Shown here: in pieces, positions 32,620 to 48,707 of the stretch
How positions within the stretch are numbered: the stretch's first letter is position 1
Layout: the number at the start of each line of letters is the position of its first letter
Sequence record: MT161459.1
DNA length: 64,000 nucleotides
Direction: 5' to 3' (one strand)
Made by a program: the position numbers and the translations under genes
The notes under the pieces: generated by a model
What the model saw: only the letters and a program-made list of their open reading frames with translations
What the model was told of the DNA's origin: nothing
Database searches by the model: none

Positions 32620-32652
32620 TTGCAAGGATTGTATTGACGATGTATAATCCTT
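32620..32652 (+). promoter_or_regulatory. sigma70-like promoter of queE with inverted repeat
   Basis: TTGCAA-17-TATAAT; AAGGATTGTA/TATAATCCTT. Confidence 0.7.
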
Positions 32653-32678
32653 CTCTATTCAACGTAAAGGTAAAAAGC

Positions 32679-33545
32679 ATGGCTCGTGAAATTACTTATT
32701 CAGAGGAATTCTTTAGCTTCCAGGGAGAAGGCCAATATACCGGTCGTCCAACTGTGTGGCTTCGTCTCCATGGTTGTAATCTGGAGTGTCCTGGCTTCGG
32801 TCGTTCTAACCCAGCTCGTCCTGATCTGTACGCAGACCAAGATCCGTTGGGCGACATCGATGTCAAGATGATCAATTCGTACGCAGATCTGCCGATCCCA
32901 GAGTTTGGTTGCGACTCCAGTTATTCGTGGTCTCGTAAATTCAAACATCTGGCTCACAAAGACACTGCAACGGATCTGGTTGACAAGCTCGTGGCACTAG
33001 CTCCTGGTGGGTTCTTTGGGGATAACATCCACTTCTGTATCACTGGCGGTGAGCCGATGATGAACCAGAACGCAGTGATCGATATCTTCGAAGAGCTGAT
33101 GGCCCGCGGAGAGCTTCCGAAGTTTGTGACTATTGAGACTAATGGTACTCGTCCACTGAAGCAAGATATGATCGATCTGATCGGTCGCGTCAAGCGTGAA
33201 GGTACTGAATGGTTCTGGTCTATCAGTCCGAAATTGCTTCACGTATCCGGTGAACAGAACGCGAAAGCAATCCGTCCGGAAGTAGTAGCTCAATACTTCG
33301 ATGTATCTGAGACTGGCCAGTTGAAGTTCGTGTGCAACGGTACTCCAGAGTGCTGGCACGAATTGGAATGGGCAGCTGATCAGTTTGATCGCGTATATCC
33401 GATCTGGGTTATGCCTGTTGGCGCTCGTCTGGAACACCAGGAGTCCAGCAGCATCGCTGGGATCAGCAACGAAGCACTTCGTCGTCGTTATAATGTAGCT
33501 GCTCGCGTTCACGTTTATGTGTACGGCAACTCTATTGGCACCTGA
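32679..33545 (+). CDS. queE: 7-carboxy-7-deazaguanine synthase (radical SAM)
   Basis: F.SFQGEG..TGRP.V.LRL.GCNL.C....CDS.YSW, ITGGEP, TIETNG, SISPK. Confidence 0.9.
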   Translation: MAREITYSEEFFSFQGEGQYTGRPTVWLRLHGCNLECPGFGRSNPARPDLYADQDPLGDIDVKMINSYADLPIPEFGCDSSYSWSRKFKHLAHKDTATDLVDKLVALAPGGFFGDNIHFCITGGEPMMNQNAVIDIFEELMARGELPKFVTIETNGTRPLKQDMIDLIGRVKREGTEWFWSISPKLLHVSGEQNAKAIRPEVVAQYFDVSETGQLKFVCNGTPECWHELEWAADQFDRVYPIWVMPVGARLEHQESSSIAGISNEALRRRYNVAARVHVYVYGNSIGT

Positions 33546-33597
33546 TCGATGGGTCTCTTCGGAGACCCTAAATAACGGACCGACAAAGGAGAATTAC

Positions 33598-33810
33598 ATG
33601 AAGACGTTCGATGAATACCTCGCCGAGGCAAAAGGGTTGTCTACTGCAGATAAGCAGAAGATTGCTAAAGATATCGTCAAAGAGATGTCCGACGATGATG
33701 ACGTGAATGAGCTGATTGGGATGTACCTGGAAAATACTCCAGGCGCAGAGCACGCTACCGATCGGGATCATAAAGACATCCTGAAGATGATCGAGAAGCT
33801 GCGCAAGTAA
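33598..33810 (+). CDS. putative internal head protein
   Basis: MKTFDEYLAEA resembles T4 capsid-targeting leader MKTYQEFIAE; CTAAATA upstream. Confidence 0.6.
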   Translation: MKTFDEYLAEAKGLSTADKQKIAKDIVKEMSDDDDVNELIGMYLENTPGAEHATDRDHKDILKMIEKLRK

Positions 33811-33952
33811 GTTTACAGCGTAGCGATATCGCAGTAAGATAGACAGACAAAGTCATTCTCGTTGTGTTGTCCGAAAGGTTTTGAACGAGCAAGTACGGAT
33901 GCCCTTGACTCTTCCGCATCCACATTAACCAACCTGAAGAAAGGAATTTTAA

Positions 33953-34618
33953 ATGAAAAACAACGCTGAATTGGGCCGTGCAGTAAACCAACATCTGACC
34001 GATCTGGGCATCAACACTCCCACCACCGATCTGCTCTACGTAGGTCGCGATGAGAAGGTTGAGAAGATCAAAGGTCATATGAAGTCCATCCTGGAAACTC
34101 TGGGTCTGGATCTGACAGATGACAGTCTGGAAGAAACCCCAATTCGTGTGGCGAAGATGTTCGTCGACGAGATCTACTCTGGTCTGGTACCGGATACCTT
34201 CCCGAAGTGCACCACTGTAGAAAACAAATTCGCTAACCATAACGAATTTGTCATGGAGCGTGATATCACTTTGTTCTCTGACTGCGAACATCACCTGCGT
34301 ACCATTCATGGCGTTGCTCATGTAGCATACGTGCCGACTGATAAGGTTCTCGGTCTGAGTAAGTTGAACCGTATCGTTCAATACTTCGGTCAGCGGCCGC
34401 AGGTTCAGGAACGACTGACTCAACAGATTGCTCACGCAATTCAGTTCATCACTGGTTCTGATCACGTCTGCGTAGCTATCGATGCTAAGCATATGTGTGT
34501 CAGTCAACGCGGTATCAAGGACTCCAAGAGCTCCACTGTTACTCTGGCTGCTCTGGGCAAGTTCGGCGAGGCGGATAGCAATCTGCGTCGCGAGTTTATG
34601 GCTGCTACTAAGCAGTAA
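33953..34618 (+). CDS. folE: GTP cyclohydrolase I
   Basis: ETP.RVAKM, CEHH, LGLSKL.R, RPQVQERLT, H.C...RG. Confidence 0.95.
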   Translation: MKNNAELGRAVNQHLTDLGINTPTTDLLYVGRDEKVEKIKGHMKSILETLGLDLTDDSLEETPIRVAKMFVDEIYSGLVPDTFPKCTTVENKFANHNEFVMERDITLFSDCEHHLRTIHGVAHVAYVPTDKVLGLSKLNRIVQYFGQRPQVQERLTQQIAHAIQFITGSDHVCVAIDAKHMCVSQRGIKDSKSSTVTLAALGKFGEADSNLRREFMAATKQ

Positions 34619-34623
34619 CGACA

Positions 34624-34652
34624 AAGGCCACCTTCGGGTGGCTTTTCTTTTG
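34624..34652 (+). terminator. intrinsic terminator
   Basis: GCCACC-TTCG-GGTGGC + U tract. Confidence 0.85.
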
Positions 34653-34683
34653 GAAATTATTTCATTTTATTTTGTTTAAGCGG

Positions 34684-34727
34684 TTGTCCGAGACATCATA
34701 GTATCAGATACTATCTTCATTGGGACG
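34684..34727 (+). promoter_or_regulatory. early promoter with 23-bp box shared with 54421-54443
   Basis: TTGTCC-17-GATACT; CAGATACTATCTTCATTGGGACG identical in both; 15 bp also at 28764. Confidence 0.7.
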
Positions 34728-34766
34728 GAAGACCGAACCACAAACACAACCACAGAGAGATACATT

Positions 34767-35210
34767 ATGACCACCATGACCCAAATCCAAGTTGTTGAAG
34801 CCTTCGCTACCACTACCCTGACCAAGACTGCTTTCGCTGCAGAACACGGTATCAGTACTCGTACTCTGGGTCGTTGGGTAGAGAAGTTCAACGGCGTAAC
34901 TGCTAACGATGCCGAAGAAGTGATCGAAGTTCTGACCGCTACCGCCGATCCGGTTGTTGTAGTCGAAGATACTCCGGTAGTAGAAACCAACGACGCGATC
35001 GTCGTACCGGTTGTTGAAGAAGTGATCGAGACTCCGGTAGTAGTTGAAGAGAAGACCAACAAACGTGCTCTGGCTGCTGCTGCATACTTCGGTAACGTTG
35101 GTATGAAGCGTAAGGATCTGATCGCGATGATGGTTGCTACCTGCGGTCTGACTGCTGCTGGTGCTTCCACTTACATCTCCAACTTCAAAACCGGTAAGTG
35201 GACTGCATAA
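34767..35210 (+). CDS. putative DNA-binding protein (HTH N-terminus + family B C-terminal domain)
   Basis: FAAEHGISTRTLGRW; RKDLIAMM...GLTAAGASTYISNFKTGKW. Confidence 0.7.
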   Translation: MTTMTQIQVVEAFATTTLTKTAFAAEHGISTRTLGRWVEKFNGVTANDAEEVIEVLTATADPVVVVEDTPVVETNDAIVVPVVEEVIETPVVVEEKTNKRALAAAAYFGNVGMKRKDLIAMMVATCGLTAAGASTYISNFKTGKWTA

Positions 35211-35215
35211 GGCAC

Positions 35216-35262
35216 TTTAGATCGGCTGTAGGACGGTGTATAATCGATCCTACAGCCGATCT
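35216..35262 (+). promoter_or_regulatory. promoter with -10 in the loop of a 15-bp perfect inverted repeat
   Basis: TTTAGA-17-TATAAT; AGATCGGCTGTAGGA/TCCTACAGCCGATCT. Confidence 0.6.
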
Positions 35263-35351
35263 GATAGATTGCTCGGATCAAGAATAAAACGGTTGTATAC
35301 GCAGAATGAAGTGTGTACAATCTCTTTTCATTACGTATAAAAGGTAAAGTT

Positions 35352-35744
35352 ATGAATCAGGTATTCAAGAAGAAAGCGTTTGTCTACTGTTCCTTCCAGC
35401 TTGAAGGTTATCACATGTATCCTGGCGCAGATGTCAATCCATCGACGGCGACTGGCGACTATCTGGACGTTTCTCATCTGGGCGATCGACATTTCCATTA
35501 TTTCAACGTACGAGTGTGGATAGAAGTCAAGCACGAAGAGCGCGATATCGAGTTTATTCAGCTGCGTCGTCGTATCGTAGCTGAATATCAGAAGGGCGGT
35601 CTGGAGATGAACGGTAAGTCCTGCGAGACTCTATCCGATGAGCTGTTCAAAACCCTGAATGAATGGTATCCGAACCGCGACATCAAGATCGATATCTCCG
35701 AAGAAGGTATCAATGGCGCGTATGTAGAATACAGCGTAGCGTAA
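35352..35744 (+). CDS. QueD-like T-fold protein, DpdL (CDG decarboxylase)-type motif
   Basis: GYH.YP, LGDRHFHYF (LxxxHxHxF rather than CxxxHGH), RDIEF, SCE...D, ISEEG.NGA. Confidence 0.7.
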   Translation: MNQVFKKKAFVYCSFQLEGYHMYPGADVNPSTATGDYLDVSHLGDRHFHYFNVRVWIEVKHEERDIEFIQLRRRIVAEYQKGGLEMNGKSCETLSDELFKTLNEWYPNRDIKIDISEEGINGAYVEYSVA

Positions 35745-35797
35745 TGTCAACGGCTCTCTTCGGAGAGCCTTCTTAAACCAAATCCAAAGGATAACGA

Positions 35798-36670
35798 ATG
35801 TCTATCAATTTCTGTCACATTTCTCCGACTCCACATCTGTCTCAACTGACCGCATTCAATGGCAGTCATCTGCTTCTGGCTCACCTGATCGAAGAAGATC
35901 CTCATTACCAGGAGTTCTACGCAAAGCTGGATGACGGTCGCGAGAAGATCATGGACAACAGCGGCTTTGAGATGTTCAAGATGGGTCGCGAAATGTACAA
36001 TCCATCCAAACTGGTTCAGATGGCTGCTTCTGTGCACGCTGACATCATCGTACTGCCAGACTATCCGATGCAACCAGCTCACGTCACGATGGATGCTGCT
36101 GCGAAGATGCTGCCTGTCTTCAAAGACAACGGCTTCGGTGCTTTCTACGTACCACAATCCGAAGTAGGCGATCTGGAAGGTTATCTGACCTCCATGAATT
36201 GGGCTCTGAACAATCCGGACATCAAAGTCATCGGGCTTAGCATTCTGGGTTGTCCGATCGCTCTGGGCATGAAGGAGCAGAAGTTCGACAGTCTGGATCA
36301 GATTGACGGCGCATACAAAATGCAACGCTTCCTGAGTCGTTGGAAGATTCTCAGCATCATGAAAGAACGTGGCATGCTGGATGAACGAGCTGTCAAGAAG
36401 TTCCACTGCTTGGGTCTCGTTGATGGGCCTAATGAAATCGATCTGCTCCAAGAGTTTGTGCCATATATCCGTAGTTGGGATACCAGCTCAGCAGTGTGGT
36501 TGGGTCTGAGCGGTAACATGACCTACGATAGCTCTCCGACTGGTCTGCGCAACGGCAAGTACGAGAAAGAAGTTGACTTTGACTTCTCTACCTCTGACGC
36601 TGATCGTATCAACAAGGCAATCAGCAATATCCAGTTTATCAACAGCAAGCCTGGTATCACCAAACTCTAA
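35798..36670 (+). CDS. dpdA: TGT-fold 7-deazaguanine transglycosylase (DpdA-like)
   Basis: IMDNSGFE, VLPD, FHCLG, WDTSSA motifs of TGT/DpdA barrels; embedded in que cluster. Confidence 0.65.
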   Translation: MSINFCHISPTPHLSQLTAFNGSHLLLAHLIEEDPHYQEFYAKLDDGREKIMDNSGFEMFKMGREMYNPSKLVQMAASVHADIIVLPDYPMQPAHVTMDAAAKMLPVFKDNGFGAFYVPQSEVGDLEGYLTSMNWALNNPDIKVIGLSILGCPIALGMKEQKFDSLDQIDGAYKMQRFLSRWKILSIMKERGMLDERAVKKFHCLGLVDGPNEIDLLQEFVPYIRSWDTSSAVWLGLSGNMTYDSSPTGLRNGKYEKEVDFDFSTSDADRINKAISNIQFINSKPGITKL

Positions 36671-36678
36671 GGAACCAA

Positions 36679-37248
36679 ATGTCAATGCATCTCATTGGCA
36701 TCAGCGGATTCAAGCGCAGCGGTAAGGATACCGCTGCTGACTTCATTCAGCTGATGGCAGAAAAACACAGAATCCCATCGAATCGGTTTGCGATTGCAGA
36801 TACTGTCATCGAGAAAGCGAGTGCAGTATTTGGATTCAAACGGGAAGATTGGGACAAGCTGAAAGTCAACGGCGTAATGTCTATTGGCGATGGTAGCATC
36901 TATCGCGATGTCCGAGATGTTGTCCGAGACTTCGGAATGGCTCTCATCGATGCAGATGAGACGTACCTGATTCGGAACGCAGAGGCCAAACTCCAACCAT
37001 TCATGCTAAACATCGTCACTGACGTTCGATTCGATCGAGAGATTGATATGATCAAACGTAATGGCGGACTGCTGATCAAGATCGTGCGGCCAGGAGTTGG
37101 GTCGGATGGTCATGTCACCGAGCAGCATCTGGATGACGACAAATACGATGCTATCGTCGTAAACGATGGCGATCTCGATCAATTGGAACGACGCGTAGCT
37201 AATGTGTGTCGGTGCCACTACAAAACTATGTTCAAGGACAACAAATGA
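36679..37248 (+). CDS. deoxynucleoside monophosphate kinase (T4 gp1-like)
   Basis: LIGISGFKRSGKDT, VTDVRF..E, GG.LIKI.R. Confidence 0.85.
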   Translation: MSMHLIGISGFKRSGKDTAADFIQLMAEKHRIPSNRFAIADTVIEKASAVFGFKREDWDKLKVNGVMSIGDGSIYRDVRDVVRDFGMALIDADETYLIRNAEAKLQPFMLNIVTDVRFDREIDMIKRNGGLLIKIVRPGVGSDGHVTEQHLDDDKYDAIVVNDGDLDQLERRVANVCRCHYKTMFKDNK

Positions 37249-37781
37249 TTCACATCAAAGGCGAAACCTCCAAATCCAAAGTGACTGGCGTAGAGTCGCG
37301 TCACATTCAACCAAACGCTGTTGACATTACCGTCGACAAGATCTTCGCGTTCTCCAAACCGGAGCTCGGCGAACTGTCTAACGTGGTAGTCATCTCAAAC
37401 AACCAAAAGCAACATCGCAGAGTGGAACAACTGCTTCCAATTCCTGGTTCTGATGGCGAATGGGCAGATGGCGAATACTGGATCCTGCCAGAAGGGGTTT
37501 ACGACTGTCTGTCTAGCTCCGAGGTTACCATAGCCGAAGGTGAAGCAGCGTTCGTCATTCAACGCAGCACGTTGAATCGCAACGGTCTTCGTTGCACTTC
37601 TGGGCTGTATGACAGCGGATTCAGCGGGAAGATCGGATTCAGTCTGACCGTGCAAGGTGGTCCAGCCAAGATCTATCGTGGCGTGGCATTGTGCCAACTG
37701 TTGACTTTCCAGGCTGAGACTCTGGGGCTGTACAATGGCAGCTACGGAACTGGCAAAGAAGGCGAAGCGCGTTACCAATGA
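37245..37781 (+). CDS. trimeric dUTPase / dCTP deaminase family
   Basis: QPNAVD, RSTLNRNG, YDSGFSG, CQL, YNG.Y. Confidence 0.8.
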   Translation: MIHIKGETSKSKVTGVESRHIQPNAVDITVDKIFAFSKPELGELSNVVVISNNQKQHRRVEQLLPIPGSDGEWADGEYWILPEGVYDCLSSSEVTIAEGEAAFVIQRSTLNRNGLRCTSGLYDSGFSGKIGFSLTVQGGPAKIYRGVALCQLLTFQAETLGLYNGSYGTGKEGEARYQ

Positions 37782-38497: not shown

Positions 38498-39448
38498 ATG
38501 ATAGAAAGAAATTGGACTATTTGGCATACCATCGAAGAACATCAATCCCACGACGTTGATGTGAAGAAGTACATCTTCAAGTCTCCGGATGCTATTGCTG
38601 AGGCTGTACTTTACAAATACGGATCGTATGAAGAGCGTACTGTAATGTGTATCAGCACCCAAACCGGTTGCCCGATGGGCTGCACATTCTGCGGTACCGG
38701 CAAGTTCTTTGGTCGCAATCTGACTACCCAAGAGATTGTGGATCAAGTCGCGTACATGATCGATGTGAACAACATCGATGCAGAGAACGTCAAGAAGCTG
38801 CAGATCATGGTCATGTCAATGGGCGAGCCGTTGCTCAATATGCCAAACGTGGCAGAGGCTTTCTTTACCTTCAATCGTTGGTACAAGAATGCTGCTCTGT
38901 TGGTATCTACATCTGCGCCGAAGACCCACGATGGTTGGGATCAGTTCTTCGAGTTGGCGAGCTGTCTCCCGCAAGTAGGTCTGCAGTTTAGCGTTCACGA
39001 GAGCACCGACGAAGCTCGCGATCTGATCATGCCAATGAAAGCGAAGTTGAATCTGGAACAGATTGCACTCCGCGGAGAATACTTCCATGAGTTGACTGGT
39101 CGTCGTCCGTACTTCAACTACTGCGTGGGCGAACACAATAACTCCGCAGAAGATGCGCAGCGTCTGGCTGGTCTCTTCGATCCAACCATATGGGAAGCTA
39201 CTCTGAGCGTGATCTGTGAAGCGGATGTTAACATGAAGGACGCTGTTCAAGATCAATTTGAAATGGTATCCGCGTTCAGTTCCAACCTGGTTGAGCTTGG
39301 TTTCAACACCCGCGTGTTCAATCCAAGTGGACAAGGGGATGTTGGGGGTGGGTGTGGGCAGTTGTGGTCGGTTCAAGAATACGCCAAGGCCAACCCACAA
39401 TCCTTCAAGCAATCTGCCGGCAATAAGATCGCCTGTCGCCAAGTATAA
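38498..39448 (+). CDS. RlmN/Cfr-family (class A) radical SAM methyltransferase
   Basis: CISTQTGCPMGCTFCGTG, MSMGEPLLN, SVH, C-terminal GGGCGQL; both extra catalytic Cys present. Confidence 0.85.
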   Translation: MIERNWTIWHTIEEHQSHDVDVKKYIFKSPDAIAEAVLYKYGSYEERTVMCISTQTGCPMGCTFCGTGKFFGRNLTTQEIVDQVAYMIDVNNIDAENVKKLQIMVMSMGEPLLNMPNVAEAFFTFNRWYKNAALLVSTSAPKTHDGWDQFFELASCLPQVGLQFSVHESTDEARDLIMPMKAKLNLEQIALRGEYFHELTGRRPYFNYCVGEHNNSAEDAQRLAGLFDPTIWEATLSVICEADVNMKDAVQDQFEMVSAFSSNLVELGFNTRVFNPSGQGDVGGGCGQLWSVQEYAKANPQSFKQSAGNKIACRQV

Positions 39449-47967: not shown

Positions 47968-48305
47968 TGGCAGCGCTTAACTTCTATCAGGTATCCGAGA
48001 GGATGCCCGATCACGATGACGAGGTCGTGTGGTGCAATCGTCATAACGGAGTTCCGATCGTTGGTACTGTGGAGCGTTTCTGGGACGAAGTGGATCTGTC
48101 TGGAGAGTCCACTGGATTCTCCATGACGTACACCGACAAAGAGGTAGAGGTCCACGAGGATCCTGATCTACGTTGGAGACTTGGTGTATCGGTAAACGGC
48201 GTCGAAATGGACCAAAAAGATTTCTGGATTGATATGAAATCTTATGTGAAATTCGTTGCCCAGAAATCCAAAGTATCGGATCATAGCTCCATCGGTAGGG
48301 AATAA
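47967..48305 (+). CDS. hypothetical protein (DUF551-like start VSERMP)
   Basis: TAATG overlap. Confidence 0.6.
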   Translation: MAALNFYQVSERMPDHDDEVVWCNRHNGVPIVGTVERFWDEVDLSGESTGFSMTYTDKEVEVHEDPDLRWRLGVSVNGVEMDQKDFWIDMKSYVKFVAQKSKVSDHSSIGRE

Positions 48306-48332
48306 CCCCTACCGCAAACGGGAGTAACGATC

Positions 48333-48707
48333 ATGCATACATTCACCAAAGGTCAAAATTGTGTAGTGTTCCACTGTGGTACTGCCCCAGTCATGAATTT
48401 GTCCGGTAAGATGCGCGTCGTTAAATCCCACGGTCGTAAGTGGGTCACCACCGAAGACAACTTCAAAGGTGAAGCGTGGGATGGGATAACTTTCGGTTCA
48501 TCAGCAACCCATCGTATCCTGACTCCGAACCAAGCTATTGAATACCGTCTGCACTACCAGTGGAACGCTACTGCAGAACAAATTGCTGATATCATGATGG
48601 ATCAAGCTACCGCGTTGACCAAATGGGAAAACTACGGTATGCACATGAACGACGCGATCCCAGGCGTAATTGCTGAGCTGTTTGTTTGGGCCAGTTTCGA
48701 TTATTAA
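48333..48707 (+). CDS. hypothetical protein
   Basis: GGAG RBS. Confidence 0.65.
   Translation: MHTFTKGQNCVVFHCGTAPVMNLSGKMRVVKSHGRKWVTTEDNFKGEAWDGITFGSSATHRILTPNQAIEYRLHYQWNATAEQIADIMMDQATALTKWENYGMHMNDAIPGVIAELFVWASFDY

Follow-up and report, generated by a model that had tools for sequence, protein, structure and literature searches.

We analyzed a cluster of genes predicted to replace guanine in phage DNA with a 7-deazaguanine, located in a 64,000-nucleotide stretch (the window) of the genome of Aeromonas phage Ahp1_CNU-2021 (MT161459.1; window and record coordinates are the same). This phage, hereafter Ahp1, is a T4-like myovirus of the Straboviridae with a genome of 218,317 bp, and its host is A. 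hydrophila. Nearly all genes of the module region are labelled hypothetical in the MT161459.1 annotation, and a literature search found no paper on the isolate. The preliminary description of this DNA had recognized genes for QueE, FolE, a QueD paralogue, a protein resembling tRNA-guanine transglycosylase (TGT) or DpdA, a deoxynucleoside monophosphate (dNMP) kinase, and a dUTPase-like protein; all were found again, on the plus strand and in nearly the same places. We assign them to a QueE-like radical SAM protein, FolE, DpdL, a DpdA3-subfamily protein, a short T4 gp1-type kinase paralogue, and a protein of the dCTP deaminase (DCD)/dUTPase superfamily.

For synthesis of the base, the cluster encodes a QueE-like radical SAM protein, the putative 7-carboxy-7-deazaguanine (CDG) synthase (301 aa; 32640..33545, plus strand), that matches phrog_2076 (E 1.3e-53). 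NCBIfam QueE models match it in part, with all equivalogs far below their cut-offs, and Pfam Radical_SAM is also below cut-off. In 42 of 80 related loci (see below), a QueE homologue occupies the equivalent relative position. FolE, or GTP cyclohydrolase I (221 aa; 33953..34618, plus strand), was identified via PF01227 (E 2.3e-58) and NCBIfam NF006824 (276 bits, cut-off 202). The rest of the genome, where the preliminary description had proposed to look for queC and queD, yielded no queC and one queD candidate, which lies outside the window at record positions 86697-87575. This 292-aa, two-domain protein is a probable QueD, with a PF01242 match of 38 bits (cut-off 22.4) in its C-terminal half. 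It adjoins a canonical dUTPase and an Rv2179c-like 3'-5' exoribonuclease-domain protein (record 85547-87575 for all three), about 50 kb from the other deazaguanine genes. A sub-threshold PTPS match at window positions 48171-48629 spans two unrelated small open reading frames (ORFs) and was taken as chance.

The searches for QueC, TGT, QueF, and DUF6610/DpdA4 covered the whole 218,317-bp record, not the window alone. No QueC domain (PF06508) was detected in the record, and therefore no Gat-QueC, and there is no Pfam-type TGT. The sole QueF signal is a sub-threshold match within FolE, and the sole match to DUF6610/DpdA4 is stop-ridden, scores 13 bits, and is not credible. These profile searches extend to the entire genome the absence of QueC, QueF, and Gat-QueC that had been noted for the window. 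In Vibrio phage D479, which carries the same DpdL/DpdA3 module, there is a partial QueC-family match (OZ195776.1, 153872-154066; 32.8 bits, model positions 133-201). The ORF that contains it has 278 aa, is distant from the module, and may encode a different PP-loop enzyme.

The 130-aa protein encoded at 35352..35744 (plus strand) is a putative QueD paralogue that we assign to DpdL, based on homology to named DpdLs and on its motif. Hutinet et al. 2023 put DpdL forward as a CDG decarboxylase in phages with FolE, QueD, QueE, and DpdA but without QueC (PMC10516641). By tblastn, the protein is 42.7% identical to DpdL of Acidovorax phage ACP17 (E 3e-22) and 33.7% identical to that of Cellulophaga phage phiST (CGPG_00067), and a profile built from 20 relatives matches phiST DpdL (hhalign, 99.2%, E 2.4e-19). 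The published DpdL signature is LxxxHRHxF instead of the QueD CxxxHGH (PMC10516641). The signature is present in Ahp1, with Leu for the catalytic Cys of QueD, as L43-GDR-H47-F-H49-Y-F51; L43, H47, H49, and F51 are invariant across the 20 relatives, and the R position is F, likewise in Pseudomonas phage PA5oct. The genome context is also that of a DpdL, as FolE, the QueD candidate, the QueE-like protein, and a DpdA are present and QueC is absent. In 76 of the 80 related loci DpdL adjoins DpdA3. The protein has no Pfam PTPS match and no PDB match by sequence or profile, and the hhalign comparison of its family with QueD of phage 9g was not significant; the relation of DpdL to QueD comes from an HHpred result for phiST DpdL (PMC10516641).

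DpdL also occurs in other settings. In ACP17 and PA5oct (219762-232121 in the latter) a GT4-like glycosyltransferase and a large unknown protein precede DpdL, and in PA5oct an epimerase-like gene and a phosphoribosyltransferase follow it. Neither phage has an Ahp1-type DpdA3 by tblastn, and these phages may use another route, or another DpdA, to the same base. In Vibrio phage Bakedbeans, gp176 (L007:1105-2256), annotated as a 383-aa ORF and without a Pfam match, ends in a DpdL-like segment and could be a fusion or an over-long gene call.

The next gene (35798..36670, plus strand) encodes a 290-aa protein for which no Pfam or NCBIfam match was found, with a marginal match to a PHROG family of unknown function; a PDB sequence search returned nothing useful. 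The AlphaFold2 model is of high quality (pLDDT 92, pTM 0.90). Z. mobilis TGT accounts for nearly all of the top 50 Foldseek matches of this model (best E 8e-7), which also include two chains of archaeosine TGT, and superposition on Z. mobilis TGT with VIA-align gave a Z score of 16.4 and a root-mean-square deviation of 3.2 Å over 237-240 residues. The family profile matches DpdA3 of Flavobacterium phage immuto_2-6A (hhalign, 98.5%, E 2.5e-15) and of phiST (CGPG_00065; 96.3%, E 1.5e-9), and tblastn gives reciprocal matches to named DpdA3 proteins (E ~1e-4). The D-N-S and W/L-D-S/T-S blocks align with those of the phiST and immuto proteins; D53, N54, and D228 do not vary among 40 relatives and are the same residues in these two proteins. 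From motif position only, these conserved acidic motifs would be equivalent to TGT Asp102 and Asp280. Profile homology and the modelled fold together identify the protein as a DpdA3 with a TGT-type TIM barrel, which bears out the earlier call of a TGT/DpdA-like gene and gives it a subfamily. The link of DpdA3 to TGT rests on fold because the hhalign comparison of its family with 9g DpdA1 was not significant. By prediction the protein exchanges guanine and a 7-deazaguanine; in vitro activity has been shown for no member of DpdA3 (PMC10516641).

The DpdA3 family is common in metagenomes, with 1,466 representatives at E <= 0.001 in a 50%-identity library. A precomputed Pfam domain is present in none of the 120 matches listed from the 90% collection. 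Comparison of DpdA3 proteins with a DNA-acting DpdA1 by net charge, pI, and presence of a CxCxxC zinc motif did not separate them, as every protein compared is acidic and lacks the motif.

In virion DNA of phiST, dG is 100% replaced by 2'-deoxy-7-deazaguanosine (dDG) (PMC10516641). FolE, QueD, QueE, DpdL, and DpdA3 without QueC are the phiST gene set, and therefore a CDG-derived base is supported for Ahp1. Judged by its genes, the Ahp1 cluster is the phiST-type DpdA3/DpdL system published by Hutinet et al. 2023, and by analogy dDG is the favoured product. FolE, QueD (at 86.7 kb), and QueE would, by homology, convert GTP to CDG. Following Hutinet et al. 2023, DpdL would then remove the carboxyl group of CDG to yield the free base 7-deazaguanine (DG), and DpdA3 would swap guanine for DG, resulting in virion DNA with dDG in place of most or all dG. 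Such DNA would be protected from restriction. The preliminary description had proposed a CDG-derived product, dDG or its 7-carboxy form (dCDG), over preQ0 or G+, and the genome-wide absence of QueC, the identification of DpdL, and the phiST precedent lend support to this view.

The wider interest of the cluster lies in the pair of genes that follows dpdA3. A putative dNMP kinase (189 aa; 36679..37248, plus strand) matches PF21448 (64.3 bits, cut-off 27.1) and phrog_139 (E 3.9e-36). Only the ends of the PF21448 model align (positions 2-38 and 167-231), and the middle, substrate-side part differs from that of a full-length gp1-type dNMP kinase encoded elsewhere in Ahp1 (record 210755-211375, 168 bits). 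The last gene (178 aa; 37245..37781, plus strand) encodes a predicted (d)NTP pyrophosphatase-like protein of the DCD/dUTPase superfamily (PF22769, 48.7 bits; NF002598, E 1e-16, below cut-off); among solved structures, a chain of an archaeal-type dUTPase comes closest to it (E 1e-5). The genes are tightly packed, with 8 bp between dpdA3 and the kinase gene and a 4-bp overlap of the kinase stop and the DCD-like start. Because Ahp1 encodes the full-length gp1-type kinase and a canonical dUTPase (record 85547-86014; PF00692, 88 bits) elsewhere, the kinase and the DCD-like protein of the cluster are additional, divergent paralogues.

To place these genes in a broader context we used two samples. 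A search of 50,697 phage records for full-length homologues of the DCD-like protein returned four phages and no others: Ahp1, Vibrio phage D479, Rhizobium phage RHph_I1_18, and Vibrio phage Bakedbeans. They are the same four isolates that carry an Ahp1-type DpdA3. The second sample consists of 80 IMG/VR metagenomic loci of a single clade, with DpdA3 proteins 48-60% identical to that of Ahp1. The conserved order in these loci is QueE, FolE, DpdL, DpdA3, one variable slot, and the DCD-like gene, with intervals between QueE, FolE, and DpdL. The DCD-like gene follows DpdA3 in 78 of the 80 loci, and the two exceptions are contig ends. The slot directly after DpdA3 holds a DNMK-type kinase in 44 loci, a DUF3310 protein of about 93 aa in 35 (e.g., L046:1371-1652 and L081:7503-7790; the relatives are numbered L013-L092), and a contig end in one; no locus of the 80 has both.

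The DUF3310 proteins deserve attention. T7 gp1.7, a kinase of dTMP and dGMP (PMC11897194, citing Tran et al. 2012), has DUF3310 as its sole Pfam domain (E 4.5e-23). In RHph_I1_18 a single protein combines DpdA3 with a C-terminal DUF3310 domain (L006:7001-8269), and the DpdA3::DUF3310 fusion was found in at least four further 50%-identity clusters. DUF3310 is missing from the whole genomes of the three isolates with a P-loop kinase, and RHph_I1_18 in turn lacks a DNMK. Mutual exclusion with the P-loop kinase in the slot, and fusion to DpdA3, suggest that DUF3310 carries or supports nucleotide kinase activity.

More broadly, a small kinase-class P-loop gene lies beside DpdA3 in four other DpdA3 lineages, which share only 22-26% identity with one another or with that of Ahp1, mostly with a gene of dNTP-hydrolase type, and the kinase families differ. 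The order is MazG, DpdL, AAA_18, DpdA3 in phiST; NTP-PPase, DpdA3, AAA_28 in immuto_2-6A; an HD+AAA_33 fusion, DpdA3, AAA_28 in Campylobacter phage CP220; and P-loop gene, DpdA3, PolA in Bacillus phage BSTP10 and Weizmannia phage Youna2. In the last two phages the P-loop call is weak, based on Pfam matches below cut-off and depositor annotation. The five DpdA3 lineages examined thus have genes of hydrolase and kinase type in tight linkage with DpdA3, and the specificities of these enzymes are predicted only. Four DpdA1-type clusters served as controls (9g, Microcystis phage Me-ZS1, Mycobacterium phage Cracklewink, and Shewanella phage S0112), and none of the four has a kinase or DUF3310 beside DpdA, with hypothetical neighbours scanned too. 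An NTP pyrophosphatase alone was rejected as a mark of DpdA3 clusters on account of a weak MazG-like gene in S0112. A DUF3268 zinc-finger protein is encoded just upstream of dpdA in that phage. Functional coupling classically shows itself in features of this kind: kinases recruited from non-homologous families, partners that exclude each other from one slot, and fusions that recur.

These patterns raise the question of what substrate DpdA3 acts on. A nucleotide kinase is useful to DpdA3 only if the product of base exchange is a nucleoside monophosphate. We propose that DpdA3 may exchange the base of a free deoxyguanosine nucleotide instead of acting on DNA, with dGMP as the simplest substrate (dGMP + 7-deazaguanine -> dDGMP + guanine). 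The DCD-like enzyme, or MazG or HD proteins in other lineages, would convert dGTP to dGMP, both clearing the competitor and supplying DpdA3. The kinase of the module would phosphorylate dDGMP to dDGDP, a host NDP kinase would complete dDGTP, and the phage polymerase would incorporate it. Generalized, DpdA3 would form an obligatory unit with a dGTP-removing pyrophosphatase and a dedicated kinase (P-loop or gp1.7-like DUF3310), fully substituted genomes (dDG, dADG, and fdPreQ1) would be made before replication, and small DUF3310 proteins would be nucleotide kinases; we give this general statement slightly less than an even chance. The full scheme for Ahp1, comprising a working DpdA3/DpdL module, dDG as product, and exchange on the free nucleotide before replication, is likewise advanced tentatively, as nearly balanced between right and wrong. 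The preliminary description had asked whether the adjacent kinase indicates a nucleotide-level route; comparative genomics makes this a serious hypothesis. A literature search found no pre-replicative reading of DpdA3 systems. Such a scheme would explain three published observations: complete replacement of G, found in DpdA3 phages; the ADG nucleoside seen in CP220-infected cells; and the failure of DpdA3 and DpdL alone to produce dDG in E. coli (PMC10516641).

The same module could instead make dDG by the published route, in which DpdA3 is a DNA transglycosylase acting on replicated DNA and the kinase and DCD-like genes are general T4-type early-region genes; this has an appreciable chance of being correct, if one well short of even. 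Its case begins with the TGT fold of DpdA3, the published proposal for DpdA3, and the fact that all characterized TGT/DpdA enzymes act on polynucleotides (PMC10516641), which equally weighs against exchange on nucleotides. Several further points count against the nucleotide-level scheme, some of them in favour of the DNA-level route. In the relatives the module is followed by gp45/44/62/regA, so that it borders replisome genes in a T4-type replication and nucleotide-metabolism region, where kinase and dUTPase genes could cluster for unrelated reasons. The DCD-like gene is the only dUTPase-family gene of RHph_I1_18 and Bakedbeans, and the adjacent kinase is the only DNMK of D479 and Bakedbeans, so the partner genes of these phages could be housekeeping enzymes. 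The extra-paralogue argument is complete for Ahp1 only, plus the dUTPase in D479. On the DpdA3 tree, the switch between kinase and DUF3310 amounts to six changes on the best tree, of which well-supported branches force only one. The weak MazG-like pyrophosphohydrolase mentioned above lies between queC and queD in the DpdA1-type preQ0 cluster of S0112 (L100, 54031-61876). No mapping of the gp1.7 kinase activity to DUF3310 is known, the sequence of the DCD-like protein does not reveal which base it prefers, and the motif of the QueD candidate, C-QNIA-HGH (C-x4-HGH), has a spacing one residue above the canonical CxxxHGH. The roles given to DpdA3, DpdL, the kinase, and the DCD-like protein are predictions. 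Set against the DNA-level route is what it leaves unexplained: the restriction of the DCD-like protein to DpdA3 phages, the constant kinase/DUF3310 slot with its repeated DpdA3::DUF3310 fusion, and the occurrence of different kinase families in unrelated DpdA3 lineages and of none in DpdA1 clusters. General early-region functions are also already provided in Ahp1 by the canonical dUTPase and the gp1 kinase, and a DNA-level enzyme does not sit easily with the inactivity of DpdA3 and DpdL alone in E. coli (PMC10516641).

The remaining alternatives concern the product or the function of the module. The module may modify DNA with a base other than dDG, either dCDG, if DpdL is no decarboxylase, or a preQ0-derived base made via host QueC. 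We consider this unlikely. For the latter variant, queC is usual in gammaproteobacterial hosts. A carboxylated or other derivative stays a minor rival because decarboxylation by DpdL is a proposal that has never been demonstrated, and dCDG does exist in a Sulfolobus virus (PMC10516641). Against such products are the clear motif and homology of DpdL, its strict retention beside DpdA3 in the relatives, and the association of FolE-QueD-QueE-DpdL-DpdA3 without QueC with dDG in the sole tested case, the phiST group (PMC10516641). It is far less probable still that the genes do not serve genome modification at all and instead support queuosine-type tRNA modification or pterin/folate supply, or form an inactive module. 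Pterin pathways also use FolE and PTPS. The genome, however, encodes no tRNA-type TGT, all frames are intact and conserved across the 80 loci, and the DpdA3 homologues of phiST, immuto_2-6A, and CP220 accompany fully modified DNA (PMC10516641).

Other genes were identified within and near the cluster. A small ORF between queE and folE (70 aa; 33598..33810, plus strand) is an annotated coding sequence in MT161459.1, and a longer 97-aa frame at this ORF gave no family match. Between folE and dpdL lies a gene (34767..35210, plus strand) for a 147-aa helix-turn-helix (HTH) protein with an IS66 TnpA-like N-terminus (HTH_28 and HTH_Tnp_1, E ~1e-3; NF047593, 28.2 bits); its middle part is acidic and valine-rich. 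These family matches rule out this ORF as the QueD paralogue. An intact RlmN/Cfr-like radical SAM methyltransferase is encoded 0.7 kb downstream of the module (38498-39448; TIGR00048, E 1.4e-37, below cut-off), and it is not part of the conserved module neighbourhood in the 80 related loci. The genes conserved downstream of the module in the metagenomic relatives (a GT2-like gene, gp45, gp44, gp62, and regA) have no counterpart in the Ahp1 window.

If the prediction is correct, the genomes of this T4-like Aeromonas phage and of a large clade of its uncultured relatives from aquatic habitats contain dDG and resist many restriction enzymes, which matters for phage therapy in aquaculture and for the sequencing or cloning of such DNA. 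Attempts to reconstitute DpdA3 and DpdL have failed; the partners of DpdA3, a kinase or fused DUF3310 and a dNTP-hydrolase-type enzyme, are probable missing components of the route by which phages achieve 100% replacement of G. With these candidates, the question of pre- versus post-replicative modification becomes a simple enzyme assay. Exchange on nucleotides, if true, would be a new type of reaction for the TGT superfamily and would allow 7-deaza-dGTP analogues, reagents in wide use, to be made enzymatically. A pre-replicative origin of fully substituted genomes would also contradict the published model.

Compared with known systems, the Ahp1 cluster is a further example of the published DpdA3/DpdL system with a new set of partners, and the kinase/DCD-like evidence is the part that goes beyond the literature. 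Like phiST (PMC10516641), Ahp1 is predicted to have the five functions FolE, QueD, QueE, DpdL, and DpdA3 and lacks QueC, its DpdL has the Leu-for-Cys motif, its DpdA3 is homologous, and its cluster holds a dNTP-hydrolase-type gene and a small P-loop gene of the kinase class. The two systems differ in that their DpdA3 proteins are only about 26% identical, the NTPase has a MazG fold in phiST and a DCD/dUTPase fold in Ahp1, the kinase is of AAA_18 type in phiST and T4-gp1 (DNMK) type in Ahp1, and the DpdL motif has R in phiST and F in Ahp1. Also unlike phiST, Ahp1 is a 218-kb T4-like myovirus with a probable, two-domain QueD encoded 50 kb away, and its system is a prediction from genes.

Among the other DpdA3 phages, CP220 (dADG) and immuto_2-6A (fdPreQ1) resemble Ahp1 in having DpdA3 homologues, 44% identical to each other, and a kinase-class P-loop gene and a dNTP-hydrolase-type gene beside DpdA3. 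They differ in their final bases, in having QueC*, QueC, QueF, or DpdN and no DpdL, and in their kinases (AAA_28 or AAA_33) and hydrolases (HD or MazG). The DpdA1, DpdA2, and bDpdA systems (9g, CAjan, and Salmonella Dpd) share with Ahp1 the TGT-superfamily fold and the upstream FolE, QueD, and QueE; in contrast to Ahp1, their preQ0 route needs QueC, 0.1-30% of G is modified, and DpdA1-type clusters have no kinase/DUF3310 partner.

The closest parallel to the proposed route lies in phages with other modified bases. T4 produces hydroxymethyl-dCTP via the dCTPase gp56, the dCMP hydroxymethylase gp42, and the dNMP kinase gp1, where gp56 is a member of the dUTPase superfamily and gp1 a DNMK, and Z-genome phages use MazZ, DatZ, and PurZ. 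The logic of these routes is that of the scheme proposed for Ahp1, in which a canonical dNTP would be destroyed and the dNMP modified and re-phosphorylated, and the folds also match. The base-changing enzyme of Ahp1 is different, a predicted TGT-fold exchanger, and we know of no nucleotide-level activity for TGT-fold base exchangers. The resemblance is one of analogy, not membership.

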